A stretch of 64,000 nt of DNA from Hyphochytrium catenoides. Lineage: Eukaryota; Protista; Hyphochytriomycota. Shown piece after piece: positions 41,054-47,626 of this stretch (its first letter is position 1; every line of letters starts with the position of its first letter). Under the pieces are notes generated by a model. It saw only the letters and a list, made by a program, of their open reading frames with translations, searched no databases and was not told where the DNA came from. Location of the stretch: the NCBI GenBank assembly GCA_900088475.1, contig FLMG01001193.1:1-64000 (forward strand), in the 5' to 3' direction. Made by a program: the position numbers and the translations under genes.

Positions 41054-43627
41054 CTACTCGTCATCATTTTTTACCTTGGACGAGGAAGAAAAAGAGCCAG
41101 CCTTTGACCTCAACGCGTTCAGAATAGCATCGGCACCAGCAGGTGAGGAACCATCGCTTGTTGCTTGGTGGACAGCTTTGATTGTAGGCTTCCCAAGACT
41201 GAAGGAGCTGCTTTTGCGCTTGCCTCTGCGCGATCTGTCAATAGAGTGTGCGACAGTAGTCGATGATGTGACTACGGTCCGGATAGAATGACTTGAAGTG
41301 AAGTCTTTCTTGACGCTCACAATGTCAGTGCCCATGATCTGCATTGTCTTTGTAGTGATCTTGGCACTGGCTGGCAGCATAGACCTGGCTTGGTCCTCCA
41401 GCTTCTCGTCTCCAAGAATAGTAAGTGCCTTCATGGTTGGAATGGCCGAGAGCTGTTGCTGTGACTCTCTTGCTTCTTTACTATGCAGTATGCGGATCAG
41501 CTCGTCCTGCTCTGCCTTTTTCTGTTGCTCTTCAGCCTTCTTAAGCGCTGCTAGCTGCTCTCCCGTCATTGCATCACCCATCACCTTCCTGGTTTTCTCA
41601 TTGACAACGGCCTCCCCCAATATTGCCGTGATCTTAGTCGTATTCTGAGTGTGGGTGTCCGGAACCGCTTTGCGAACCATGTCGAGGAGCGAGTCGTCTC
41701 CCAGCATGTCAATGGCTTTCATATATTTGGCTAATTCAGCCGCACTGTGGTTCAAGGAGCCATTCCGACCGCGAGATGGAATTGAGGTGGTGGAAAGGGA
41801 TCTTCCAGTTATGTCTGGAGGCTTGATCGCTGTTTCCGAGGTCTTTGTTGGACCCATCAGGCCCTCAAGTTGATCTCTAATAGCTTCCTGGGTGGCTGCA
41901 GCCAACTGGTCAGCGCTGACCTGTGCCCCGAACAGGCTCTGGAGCTTGATACTAAAACGCTGAAGTTCACTTTTCCTTTTTTCTCTCGGCGAAGGAGGAG
42001 CAGGTGTGTTTAGGGTATTGGGGGACACGGGCTCAACAGACGCCGCTGTAGATGGGGGACTGGCAGCTAATGAAGGTGGACAAGAAACTTGGTCACATGG
42101 AGCACTAGGATGCCACAGCTAGTCGGAGATCTTACCTCCAGGAGTTCCGCTTGACACCTCTTCCTTCTGTGTGGTGACTATCCGCTCCACAGTCTCACTG
42201 GTCTGCATTGACACAGAGGCTACGCCAGAGCTGGAGGAGGCATGCATGGTTGCTTGCCGACGCTCCTTCATGAGCTCCTCATCGACAATCATTAGCTTAG
42301 CCGCGCTGATATCTGCTCCGAACATGTTCCTCAGCTTGCTACTCAGCACTTCCGCCGTACCCAAGCGATCCAGCACCTTTGGATTAATCTGGGCATTCTC
42401 TGGAACCATCTTCTTGACAGCCTCAGCATACTCCTCTCCCATCAACGAGACCATCTTCGATCCTGATTCGCCCTTTAGTGATGTGCGGGGCAGTAATCTC
42501 TTTCTCACCGCGACGTTTTTCGATGGACTTTCCAAGATTGCCTTCCACATAGGCTCCAAAGCATCGGTGGGCAGATGGAAGGATGCCTCAAACGTCTCAA
42601 GAAAGGCCTTCCTCTCATCTAATGATGGATGATGTTTTTTCAACGTAGTAATGCTGTGGTCAAAAGCCTACATTGAACACACCGAGAGTTGTACCATTAG
42701 CGATTGCTGGGGAAAGGAGGGGCGGAGAAGGCAGAGCGAGTTGAGAAAATAGGTAGCAACTAGTAGCTAAGGCGTACAGGTCATACAAGATTGAGAGTAG
42801 GCGCCTACCGCTCATGGTAAGTAGAGGAAGAGGTCGTGCAGCTTGCTTACCTCAACCATACTGCCGAAGATGAAGTTTATATCATCCTGAGATAGCTCCG
42901 CTTCGTCCGTTCTCTTATCGCAGGATGATTGAGGGCTTCTGGCCTTAAGAGCCCCTGGGTTCCCACCGGTTACAAACGGCTGAGACTCATGATCCCGTTG
43001 TTGGACACTGTTGGTGGAAGGAGAGCTTGGCTGAGGATGCGCCTGAGAGGCTGCTGACTCGTTAGCGCCTGTGGCGCGCCTGGTCGTCGGACTTTCACCA
43101 TCAATGGGGTCCAAACTCAATGATGGTCCATTGACTGCAAAACTCTTACGGTCAGACTGATTGTGTTCTTCCTTCTTGTCAGGTTCCATAGTAGTTGTGC
43201 CGGACTTGTCCGGTAGAGACAAGCTTTGTTCCCCACCGGAGCCTGAGACCGCTAAGCTTACTGCCAATGGCAGCCCGCTAGTCCTTAATGAAGAGGTCTG
43301 TGATGCTGGCTTCGCTTGTTCCACCAAATCAGCCGTGACCGGTGGTGAAGGCATTGAAGCGATTGGACCATCATCTCCTAGTGAAGACGGCGCAGCTTTC
43401 TTGGTGGCGTTCTGAGGCGATGGAGATTTTGTCCAGATTTTAAAGGGACTGAAACCACCCTCATTGCCCTTCTGGCCCTTGTCATTAGCCTTTTTGTCAA
43501 AAGATCGGCTCTTAAGAGTGATCTTTCCTGGGCTGCTGGCCTGTCCTCCAGGATGTCTATTAGCAGACTCGCTGGTAGTCCGCTGGTCCACTCCCACTCG
43601 GGTCAAGCTACTTTCCTGCGCGCCCAT
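41054..43627 (-). CDS. uncharacterised repeat protein, paralogue A (3 exons; MGAQES N-myristoylation motif)
   Basis: Long ORFs 42812-43627, 42119-42643 and 41054-42028 joined by GT-AG introns. K-x4-[LM]G repeats. Clearly homologous to the gene at 45517-47626. Confidence 0.8.
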
Positions 43628-45516
43628 CTCGTTCTAGGTATAGAACAGCCAGGAATATATGTTCCCTGTAACCTCAAGGTGAGGGCGTCTTGGCTCTTGT
43701 GTTATATCATAGCATCTTTTGCCTGGGGCAGACTTCACAAGGGCATGGAGGTACTTCTCTGCTGCAGTCCCTCCTGTAGGTAAACTGCACCGTCTCAACC
43801 AAGCTTCGCCCAACAGGCGGAACTCTTATCTTAACCCTTGCCGTGTCGTTGTTGCTCTATGCTATTACTTTTGACCCTGAAAGGTGTGAGGCTCAGCCGA
43901 TGACCAGGCTAACTGTTCTTAGGACCGACAGATCAACATGCAGCAGAGCACTGACTAAACTCTTACCGGTCAAGAGGGACTCCTAAGAGAAGAAGAGCAT
44001 TGGAGACTGTAAGAGGAGCATGGTGAGCAGAGCAGAAGCGCCTTGGACGACGACAGAGCTGGAAGACGTGGTGGAAGGAGAAATGCCACTTATATTAACT
44101 GGTTCAATTTACTCTGAGCAAAAAGGTCAAGCGGCCAATAAATCGAACTAAATGAGACAGGACAGCGAGACAGAGTAGGACTAAGATAGAGCAGCCTATC
44201 GACCAGTAGTAGATAGATAGGAATAGCTCCTGAGCAAGAGCCTGGCACAAACTGGGGCCTTTGTATCTGCGGAAAAAGGTGAGAGGAGGGAGGCAGAGGA
44301 GGAGAATGACAGAGGTGAACACCGCCACCTACGCAACCGTGGAGACTGGATTAGGGAGGGTAGAATACGGAGGGACGCAAGAAAGAGTGTCGAAGGTACA
44401 GAGGAGAACACACGTAACACGAAAGTGAGAGACAGAAGAGAAGGAAAGCAGGTGATGTGTGCTAGCCGAGACTAGGTCAGAGAGCACATAATAAGGCAAG
44501 GCCCACAGAACCTCGAGCAGCAGACAAGGCAAGGCATAGGAACGCGAGAGCGTAGACGCTGTTGCCCTTCCTCTCCACCAGACTACAGGGACTAAACTTG
44601 GGGTGAAGGAGATGAGCGAAGTGCCCTTGGGGCCTGGCCCTGGTGCCTCAATGACCGCTGGTGTTGGGCTGGTGAAGCGGACTACTACAAGGGACAGACA
44701 GAAAGTGAGTGCACTTCAGAAACGCGAAACTCCCACATGCCCCATCTGACCCCTATAGGGGTATTCTCTCTTAATAAGACTACATAATAAGGGCCGTTAC
44801 AGTTTTATTGAACCTAATAGAGAGGTTAGGCCGTCTGGAAGAGGAAGGCCGTCTTGGCTGGGCGACTCGGCGGCTCCATCAGGGACCAGGAGGAGGCAGG
44901 ACAGAGGAAGCGGAGGAGGAGAAGACAGACAGACAGGAGGTTGAGAAGAGAAAGGAACCAGCGGACTTACCGTGAGGCTAAGAGAACAGAAGGCAGGACG
45001 GCTGGAGTCTCAGTAGCATCTCTGAATGCCGTCGGTTAGCATCCCTGCTGCTCTCAAGCGATAGCACCTCGAGCAGGACCACCAGTAGACGCTTGAACAT
45101 GCCTACTACTTTCAGCTTCTTGGTGATAGATAACATAATAGGAGTTCTGGCAGTTGGGATACCTATAAGTGCAGGGCCAAGACCAGGAGCATAATGAAGC
45201 CGGGTAGCAAACAGGACGGTGCTCTCTTCCTGGCCACCTCGCCATTTGGTCCTAAGCTAGACATCAGAAGCCAAGGCCAATGATGTTCGCAACGTGCAAT
45301 TCACAAGGCGCCGACCTGATATTGATGGATATAATTCTAACCCTTATCATGTTAGAGCTACGTTTTGTTACTCTCGTTCCTCATAAGCGCTTCAACTCAT
45401 TTGCGTCATCGCTGCTCCACCACCTCGTCGAATAAAGTCTCACAAGACTTCCGCTCCGCCACCACAAAGACCCAACTCGGGCCATCAATGACGCCTAAGT
45501 ACGAGAGGGTACCCAC

Positions 45517-47626
45517 TTAGCGAGTGAAGTCTCGCGGCATCTTAACGATGTCAGCGCCCATCAGCTGTAGCGTCTTCTGCGTGAGCTTTGCGGATGCGGG
45601 GACGATCACTCTGGCTTGTTCTTCCAGCTTTGAGTCTCCGAGCAGAGAGATTACTTTTGGATTAGGCGTTGTGCTGAGCTGCTGCTGTGACTCTCTTGCC
45701 TCTTTGCTTTGAAGTATCTTCTCCAATTCGTCCTGCTCCATCTTCCTCAGAGCGTCCTCTACCATGGACATAGACTTCCGTTGTCTCGTCGACATCCCTT
45801 CACCTAATACCTTACGGGTCTTCGCATTCACCACCGCCTCACCCAAGACAGCCGTGACCTTTGGAGCGTTCATTGCCCCTGGGTTCACCGGAACAGCCAG
45901 CTGGACTCTCTGGAGCAGAGCTTCGTCACCCAACATCTCGACGGCCTTGAAATGTCTGTTGTCGATGATGCTTGTCCCAGTCGTTAGCTGTTCGTCTGTG
46001 GGTTTAGCGTTCAGAACCCGCTCCATTTCTTTTTTTGCCTCCTTCTCCTTTGCTTCCCGCTCCTTGGCCTCTTCTTGTCGAGCATGAGCAATCTGCTCGG
46101 GCGTCATAGCATCACCCAACACCTTCATGGTCTTCTCGCTTACCACCGCCTCACCAAGTATAGAGGCTACTTTCTTTGAGTTCTGATTGCGAGAGCCTGG
46201 AGGGATGCTTTTCCTCAGGGTGTCAATGAGGAAGTCATCCCCTAGAATCTCAACTGCCTTTGCATCTTTCCACTTCACAGGTGTCGCCCTAGTGTTCCGG
46301 TCAGGACTATCAGCTTCACTAGAGCCTTGCTGAGGACTGGCTGGTGGGCTTAGGTCATCCGTCTCATCTAGCATGACAGAGAGCTCGGGGACTATCGCAT
46401 CTCGTGCGGCGGCTAGGTTGCCTCCTGTTATCTTACTGCCAAATAGCGTTTGAAGCTTCACACTGAAAAGGTCGAATTCGGGCAGATGCAGTGTTGTGAG
46501 AGTGGAACCGAGACTTTCCGAAGCGGTTCCTTCGGCAGAGAGCGCTAGGTAAAAACGTTGGATTAGTATGATAGAGTCTTCGCCACATTATCATTATATG
46601 AGTTTTGTTACCTGAAGGTGAAGGAGGCGAGCGTGTTACATTCCTTTCCTTCACATACTCCTCGTTCGCAAGAAGCAACATTGCCGGAGTGATGGCTTCT
46701 CCAAACATTTGCTTCAGCTTTGTACTGAGGATTTCAGCGGTACCCAAGCGATCTAGGGCTTTGCGATTGACCTGGGCACCAGGTGGCACAGTTCTTCGAA
46801 TGGTCTCCGCATATTCTTCTCCAAGCATTGCTATCATCTTCGAGTCAGTGATACTGCCCCTTGGCTTCATGGCTGGAGTTAGCCGAATGCCTGTTTTCCC
46901 ATGTAGACTACTGGGAGTGGATGTCCACACTTTATCTAAAAGCTGTCGTGGGGCATCAATACTCTGCTCGAACACCGCATAAAAAGCCTCTTTCTCGCTG
47001 AGACTTGGGTGCTCTTGCTTCAATTTGCTGATGCTCTCTTCAAAAGCCTGGCACAGAAGCTCTCAGGACAGGTTGACGCGTAGAGGCTTTTCGAGCGAAT
47101 CCAAGACGAAGATGAAAGACAAACCGGAGTGCCTGATTAGATGACAGCACCTACCAGGACAACGCTAGAAAAGATGATCTCGACCTCTCGTTGTGTCAGG
47201 GTATAGCCAGCGGGCCCCTGCTCAGCCTGTGGTACTAGTGGTAGCGTTATAGTATGCCCGAATGGAAGTCTGAAATAAGCTACGAAAGTCGTACGTAGAT
47301 GGGAGCTAACCTTTAGGGAGAAGCGGTGAGACGGAAATAGCATGTTGCTCTGGCGTAGCAGCAGCCACGGTAGGGTTCTCTTTATCAGGCGCTGCATCCC
47401 GCGAAAGGCCTGCTTCAGTGATAGCGTTGTTCGAAGCGCTGGAGTGCGCCTTGTCGCTTGGTCTTTGTCCTGACAAATGTATTAGACTTCTGAAGGGCGA
47501 CAGCGTGAAAATGTTCAAAAGGAAGCATATCAACTAACCGGTGGTCGCTTGCTCTACTACGAGACCAGATTGGCCAGGATTACTCCCATCAGTCACATTG
47601 GCGCTCCGGCTCGTTTTGGCGCCCAT
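45517..47626 (-). CDS. uncharacterised repeat protein, paralogue B (about 5 exons; MGAKTS N-myristoylation motif)
   Basis: ATG at 47626. Shares HPSL.E..AF, K.LDRLGTAE.LS.KL..MFG, KLQ.LFG and SKEARESQQQLS with paralogue A. Confidence 0.8.

Follow-up and report, generated by a model that had tools for sequence, protein, structure and literature searches.

The window analyzed here, 64,000 nucleotides (nt) of contig FLMG01001193.1 of Hyphochytrium catenoides (assembly GCA_900088475.1), carries on its minus strand two intron-containing paralogues, gene A (41054-43627) and gene B (45517-47626), which are very probably real members of a conserved family of repeat proteins that start with Met-Gly (MG). 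The proposed family plan includes: (i) an N-terminal Met-Gly signal of predicted N-myristoylation, (ii) a disordered linker, (iii) an amphipathic helix, here termed the N-box, and (iv) 2-7 tandem repeats of ~104 amino acids (aa). The explanation proposed, tentatively and with slightly less than even confidence, is that A and B arose by an old tandem duplication within an unnamed stramenopile family and serve as membrane-anchored multivalent adaptors built from a new repeat.

Two paralogues and the repeat they share

The original prediction of two same-strand paralogues that both start MGA..S is confirmed. Manual GT-AG splicing yields the following gene models.

Gene A, 41054..43627, minus strand: coding exons 43627-42851, 42667-42136 and 42066-41054 (stop included); 2322 nt, 773 aa; start MGAQESS; frames checked.
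Gene B, 45517..47626, minus strand: coding exons 47626-47539, 47469-47311, 47234-47155, 47047-46612 and 46544-45517 (stop included); 1791 nt, 596 aa; start MGAKTSR.

The introns of both genes have GT-AG ends and CTAAC-like branch points, and an in-frame stop lies three codons upstream of the ATG in gene A and five codons upstream in gene B. Two intron positions are common to the pair together with their phases, a phase-0 intron inside the N-terminal helix and a phase-1 intron ahead of the last exon. The genome, assembled in 4758 scaffolds plus a mitochondrial chromosome, has short introns (PMC5795050). A public spliced contig of 270 nt (run X1) joins 47538 to 47468 and 47311 to 47234 on the minus strand with GT..AG ends, matching introns 1 and 2 of gene B (47538-47470 and 47310-47235) exactly. 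Thus, gene B is transcribed and, at these two introns, spliced as modelled. Expression, whose lack was among the points on which the original prediction could have failed, is in this way found for gene B, with gene A uncovered.

Gene A has nine copies of the motif K-x4-[LMF]-G and gene B has 12, compared to means of 0.45 and 0.33 after shuffling and a maximum of three copies in 2000 shuffles. This bears out the repeated motif noted at first inspection (~0.4 copies are expected by chance); the repeat length of ~60 aa given at that time does not hold, as the actual module is ~104 aa. Unit-to-unit spacing across the family has a median of 104 aa (range 96-113), and the ~57-aa triple Lys/Gly (K/G) cluster is the conserved first half of a module completed by a charged helix that runs to L-x-x-[VI]-L. 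In an alignment of 95 units, the first part of the consensus reads V-x-x-K-A-L-x-[ML]-[LM]-G-D-E-x-L ... V-P ... K-A-x-x-x-L-G-[ED] ... K-A-R-K-R-L-G-S-x-M-[TS]-x-E-Q, and the second part is the charged helix followed by L-x-x-[VI]-L-x-x-x-P-[TS]-x-E-Q-L. Column conservation in the same alignment is 97% for K7, 93% for G13, 98% for K36, 98% for G42, 90% for K49 and 100% for G55. Asp, Glu, Ser or Thr follows each conserved Gly, with [TS]-x-E-Q after the third; by general helix-capping rules, these residues would form helix C-cap/N-cap junctions. Across the family, charged residues make up 44% of the long helix (~30 residues) and hydrophobic ones 21%.

The elements of the two proteins, located by unit profile or motif scan, are as follows (all on the minus strand).

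42578..42895: gene A N-box, an amphipathic helical block; coding 42895-42851 plus 42667-42578, split by a 183-nt intron (42850-42668).
42290..42457: unit 0 of gene A, a triple K/G cluster that lacks the long charged helix (unit-profile E 8.9e-14).
41867..41953: single third-type motif of gene A, KLQSLFG with a helix (motif scan).
41441..41728: gene A full repeat unit with K/G triple cluster, charged helix and ELIRIL (unit-profile E 4.8e-19).
41291..41440: terminal partial unit of gene A, reduced to the first and last K/G motifs (unit-profile E 8.2e-8).
41057..41290: gene A-specific Ser-rich C-terminal tail, with the basic cluster RSRRGKRKSSSFSLGK at 41189-41236 and no counterpart in gene B.
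46958..47199: gene B N-box; coding 47199-47155 plus 47047-46958, split by a 107-nt intron (47154-47048).
46673..46840: unit 0 of gene B, likewise a triple K/G cluster (unit-profile E 2.9e-12).
46378..46464: single third-type motif of gene B, KLQTLFGS with a helix (motif scan).
45964..46269: gene B full repeat unit 1, whose long helix is 55% charged; without counterpart in gene A (unit-profile E 3.0e-24).
45667..45957: full repeat unit 2 of gene B, which corresponds in position to the full unit of gene A and is 52-54% identical to it (unit-profile E 1.7e-17).
45520..45666: gene B terminal partial unit (unit-profile E 1.3e-6).

The helical block that had been described as shared is found in both proteins, and the phase-0 intron interrupts it at the identical place, between LSQDDINFIFGSMVE and AFDHSITTLKKHHPSLDERKAF in A and between LTQREVEIIFSSVVL and AFEESISKLKQEHPSLSEKEAF in B. 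In each gene, a triplet in the exon after the N-box is followed by the lone third-type motif, the full units (one in A, two in B) and the terminal partial unit. Units with the full cluster thus number two plus one partial in gene A and three plus one partial in gene B (profile E 3e-24 to 1e-6), and gene B ends directly after its last partial unit. By eye, the cluster RSRRGKRKSSSFSLGK of the gene A tail is like a MARCKS-type effector or kinase-substrate patch.

Folds were predicted, and known domains searched, exon by exon or on single units. An AlphaFold2 (AF2) model of one unit (gene B full unit 2, 95-row alignment) has a predicted local distance difference test score (pLDDT) of 80 and a predicted template-modelling score (pTM) of 0.42, with helices at residues 3-12, 15-23, 35-45, 48-54 and 60-86. 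The long helix reaches pLDDT 96-98, and its composition resembles that of an ER/K-type single helix more than that of a coiled coil; the short helices score 73-89 in this model and 50-73 in a multi-unit model. No named domain had been recognized at first inspection, and this is borne out by Pfam, PDB sequence and fold searches. Pfam finds nothing recurrent on all exons of A and B or on the 95 units, and among 60 relatives it finds an RGS domain in two, the remainder being noise. DUF7101 was set aside as a candidate, being sub-threshold on relative P0001 at residues 257-311 (E 1.9e-4, 21.9 bits vs a cut-off of 27) and absent from every other member and from the genome. RGS has no match on any A or B exon at E <= 1, and GoLoco (PF02188) has none on these exons at E <= 1 and is not among the families listed for the units at E <= 0.1. 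The PDB gives no significant match to either of two sequence profiles (five-row and 95-row), Foldseek returns 0 chains from the PDB, and the ESM Atlas, searched by features and by structure, gives no match (template-modelling score <0.5). An exhaustive VIA fold search has its best Z at 4.0, a background value reached on the long helix alone; 'no known fold' is provisional for the K/G cluster, since residues 1-55 were barely probed. A word-indexed protein search with the last exon of gene B finds no match, by a method insensitive here (length window, low-complexity words); with a 17-row multi-unit profile it recovers four members, all already found. By-eye readings of the motifs as RIIa/AKAP-like, annexin-like or tau KXGS-like were not retained, as no Pfam or fold match supports them.

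Genes A and B are 44-53% identical over their conserved parts, with nonsynonymous divergence (dN) of ~0.4-0.5, synonymous divergence (dS) >2 (saturated) and dN/dS of ~0.2. A dN/dS of this order together with saturated dS identifies the pair as an old tandem duplication, both copies of which are under purifying selection. The 61-Mb genome has no matches beyond these two genes, by single sequence or by profile. P0007, a 104-aa fragment from a soil metagenome (SRR5688572), is 78% identical to gene B unit 0 and 52% identical to gene A unit 0; thus, the duplication predates the split from that soil relative, and a hyphochytrid relative with a B-type copy is, judged by this match, present in the soil sample.

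The 1.9-kb spacer between the genes (43628-45516) has no open reading frame >75 aa on either strand and presumably holds the promoter of gene A and the 3' untranslated region of gene B. GC and AT skew switch sign in the 44001-46000 bin, at this spacer.

Relatives across the stramenopiles and the N-terminal signal

An exhaustive HMMER protein search (one iteration, five-row unit profile), of the kind the original prediction had proposed, recovers ~60 relatives. The threshold of E <= 1e-3 is passed by 61 proteins, including a single false positive (P0032, a bacterial RTX protein of 4346 aa), and that of E <= 1e-10 by 22. Names were looked up for 30 clusters, about half of the total, and in these the annotation is always 'hypothetical', 'unnamed' or 'uncharacterized'. 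The named relatives are all stramenopiles and comprise: (i) Hondaea fermentalgiana of the Labyrinthulomycetes and (ii) Phaeothamnion confervicola, Chrysoparadoxa australica and Florenciella parvula of the Ochrophyta. The other relatives derive from MMETSP or EukProt transcripts or from metagenome contigs of marine or soil origin. With Hyphochytrium (Pseudofungi), the family spans at least three major stramenopile branches, so that the lineage-specific family first proposed gives way to one that, on the matches found, predates the split of Bigyra, Pseudofungi and Ochrophyta. The literature searched on the family, on its Hondaea member and on myristoylation combined with RGS in stramenopiles does not describe it.

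Parts of the layout of A and B recur among these relatives. Florenciella P0072 (901 aa) shows the whole of it, with an MGAGAS start, an N-box and approximately seven units. Blocks like the N-box (L[ST]..E[IV]..[IL][FY]...) were noted by eye and regular expression in A, B, P0009, P0010, P0014, P0018, P0048 and P0072, and a related block is present in P0002 and P0003. Two relatives, P0005 (EukProt) and P0012 (Tara Oceans), have an RGS domain (PF00615) N-terminal to the repeats. P0012, which is apparently intronless and derives from ENA/Tara Oceans contigs of ~2 kb (loci L012/L013), starts MGCVAQ, a sequence that suggests possible dual acylation, and continues with RGS at 49-176 and three units.

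The starts of A (MGAQESS) and B (MGAKTSR) both fit the N-myristoyltransferase (NMT) rule, defined as Met-Gly, a small uncharged residue 3, one of Ser, Thr, Ala, Gly, Cys or Asn as residue 6 and any residue but Pro as residue 7. A chance fit to this rule is expected in a few per cent of cases at most. Twenty-one relatives have 90 aa or more ahead of their first unit; an MG start is present in 17 of these and a fit to the full rule in 12. By contrast, MG starts only three of the 38 probable fragments. Thus, the predicted lipid-anchor signal is a family trait. The genome also encodes an NMT, detected as PF01233 exons above cut-off at G000:C625:70733-71508 (+). The membrane tethering claimed in the original prediction is therefore sound as a prediction, since the MG..S start is conserved in the family and the NMT gene is present. 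The NMT gene shares the contig with A and B, ~7 kb past the window end and ~23 kb from both genes, a proximity that is probably a coincidence.

The adaptor model and competing readings

The mechanism we infer for a membrane-anchored multivalent adaptor brings together a putative lipidation, a membrane site, an adaptor role, phospho-regulation and a G-protein link. The lipid would keep the protein on the cytosolic face of the membrane. Each repeat would form three short helices, each with a near-invariant Lys at its start, a near-invariant Gly six residues on and then a capping Asp, Glu or Ser, after which the ~30-residue, highly charged helix would extend to L-x-x-[VI]-L. The charged helices may act as stiff spacers and the K/G clusters as repeated docking sites for one partner, making the whole a multivalent membrane adaptor.

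The third junction is a candidate site of regulation. In the 95 units, the residue at this place is Ser/Thr in 62 and Asp/Glu in 24, and Arg or Lys stands at -3 in 45 of the 62 Ser/Thr units vs four of the 24 Asp/Glu units (Fisher 5e-6, for units that are related by descent). The R-x-x-S of most relatives has the shape of a basophilic-kinase site, and phosphorylation may thus switch docking or folding; a kinase site at which acidic residues may take the place of Ser would be expected to give this distribution. All five full clusters of Hyphochytrium A and B have Glu, Asp or Ala at the junction and a hydrophobic residue at -3, so that these copies may be constitutive. The RGS fusions hint at heterotrimeric G-protein signalling, and G-alpha genes are present in the Hyphochytrium genome. 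The more specific version of the model, in which the 104-aa unit is an unrecognized partner-binding module (e.g., a G-alpha or G-protein-pathway repeat in the role of GoLoco) that is phospho-switched at the R-x-x-S cap in most lineages but, in Hyphochytrium, kept permanently 'on' by Asp/Glu, is quite unlikely.

Several observations weigh against the adaptor model. The run X1 contig ends 52 nt short of the gene B ATG and does not reach the 3' exons, and no RNA contig covers gene A. Lipidation is a prediction from the N-terminal residues, and the RGS fusion occurs in two of ~60 proteins only. Within mixed proteins, the contrast at -3 shrinks to 10/17 vs 3/11; Ser, Asp and Thr are ordinary helix N-cap residues, and no kinase need act on them. 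The AF2 multi-unit model (341-aa exon, 27 rows) is poor overall (pLDDT 64, pTM 0.27), with the long helices confident, and the model confidence of the K/G cluster would fit a small domain or conditionally folded motifs alike.

A purely structural role would make A and B rods of a membrane skeleton, in which the charged helices associate in coiled coils or in spectrin-like stacks of ~104 aa to build a lattice that the lipid anchors beneath the plasma membrane or the flagellar membrane. The regular period of 96-113 aa is near the 106 aa of the spectrin repeat, the long helices are confidently predicted, and the VIA matches are confined to coiled coils and axonemal helices. These matches do not rise above background, however, and a helix with so few hydrophobic and so many charged residues would make a poor coiled-coil core; the units match neither Spectrin nor any other Pfam repeat, and four short helices plus one long are predicted rather than three long ones. 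A membrane skeleton is, on balance, rather doubtful. The basic residues invite another reading, an electrostatic switch of the MARCKS type, in which the Lys residues and K-A-R-K-R-L-G-S bind acidic lipids beside the myristate and the protein is set free once the Ser is phosphorylated, with no protein partner involved. Each unit has three near-invariant Lys and a basic run ahead of the Ser, Arg at -3 is associated with Ser, gene A has the basic Ser-rich tail with RSRRGKRKSSSFSLGK, and MGAQES is akin to the MARCKS start. The units are not net basic, however (the most repeat-rich exon has an isoelectric point of 5.7, with 47 Lys plus Arg vs 51 Asp plus Glu), the Hyphochytrium units are without the Ser, and the basic residues are scattered over helices instead of being gathered in one unstructured patch. 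Such a switch is unlikely.

If the MG start were unused or unlipidated, A and B would be soluble cytosolic or nuclear helical-repeat proteins, and MG..S would reflect the choice of gene model or ancestry without function. The RNA contig that stops short of the ATG and the absence of MG from four of the 21 apparently complete relatives are consistent with this. The in-frame stops closely upstream of both ATGs argue otherwise, as does the retention of MG at 17 of 21 complete N-termini in clades that split near the stramenopile base, with an intervening linker that is not conserved; a soluble protein is distinctly unlikely. The first K/G motifs could also be read as UBA-like three-helix bundles, which would make the proteins multivalent ubiquitin binders. 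The five-row unit profile touched the UBA of CBL-B (2jnh, 2ooa; E 0.7-1), and KMIAMLGEEYAE is by eye like the UBA helix-1/loop region. The match is at chance level and disappears with the 95-row profile, Pfam scans find no UBA and Foldseek no chain, such that this reading is close to refuted and extremely improbable.

Known systems and significance

The adaptor model finds partial parallels in well-known membrane and helical-repeat proteins. MARCKS, BASP1 and GAP-43 share with A and B an MGA..S start with predicted myristoylation, a long N-terminal region that is disordered, basic and Ser clusters and the lack of an enzymatic domain. By contrast, they have no sequence similarity to A and B, which are mostly an ordered helical repeat of ~104 aa with invariant Lys/Gly and units that are not net basic. 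The GoLoco/GPR proteins (RGS12, RGS14 and AGS3/LGN) similarly have several short helical motifs per chain and, like the two fusion relatives, RGS in the same chain; the GoLoco consensus is absent from the family, however, A and B have no RGS, and G-alpha binding is pure conjecture. The ER/K single alpha-helix spacers of myosin VI/X and caldesmon resemble the long helix as modelled (~30 residues, 44-55% charged, few hydrophobics, pLDDT >90 without partners). The A/B helix differs in that it is shorter than the classic ER/K helix, has a conserved hydrophobic L-x-x-[VI]-L end and belongs to a repeat instead of serving as a lone linker.

Like the spectrin repeat (PF00435), the family is composed of all-helical tandem repeats of ~100-110 aa, but without Pfam or structural match and with four short helices plus one long in place of a three-helix bundle. 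AKAP12/gravin and AKAP7, in which a lipid anchor and repeated helical docking elements organize membrane signalling, provide a working analogy for how A and B might function. No homology underlies this analogy: the N-box misfits the RII-binding helix pattern by eye, and there is no RIIa/AKAP Pfam match.

On present evidence, this is one more well-defined dark family and not a surprise. What is new is the repeat, which is undescribed, whereas a lipid-anchored helical-repeat adaptor is as such of a known kind. The stramenopiles, among them diatoms, kelps, oomycete pathogens and thraustochytrids, have a membrane signalling machinery much of which is, to our knowledge, without animal or plant counterpart. 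The repeat profile allows dozens of 'hypothetical proteins' to be annotated, and the family provides a concrete candidate for a membrane adaptor in this group, possibly linked to RGS and G-protein signalling.

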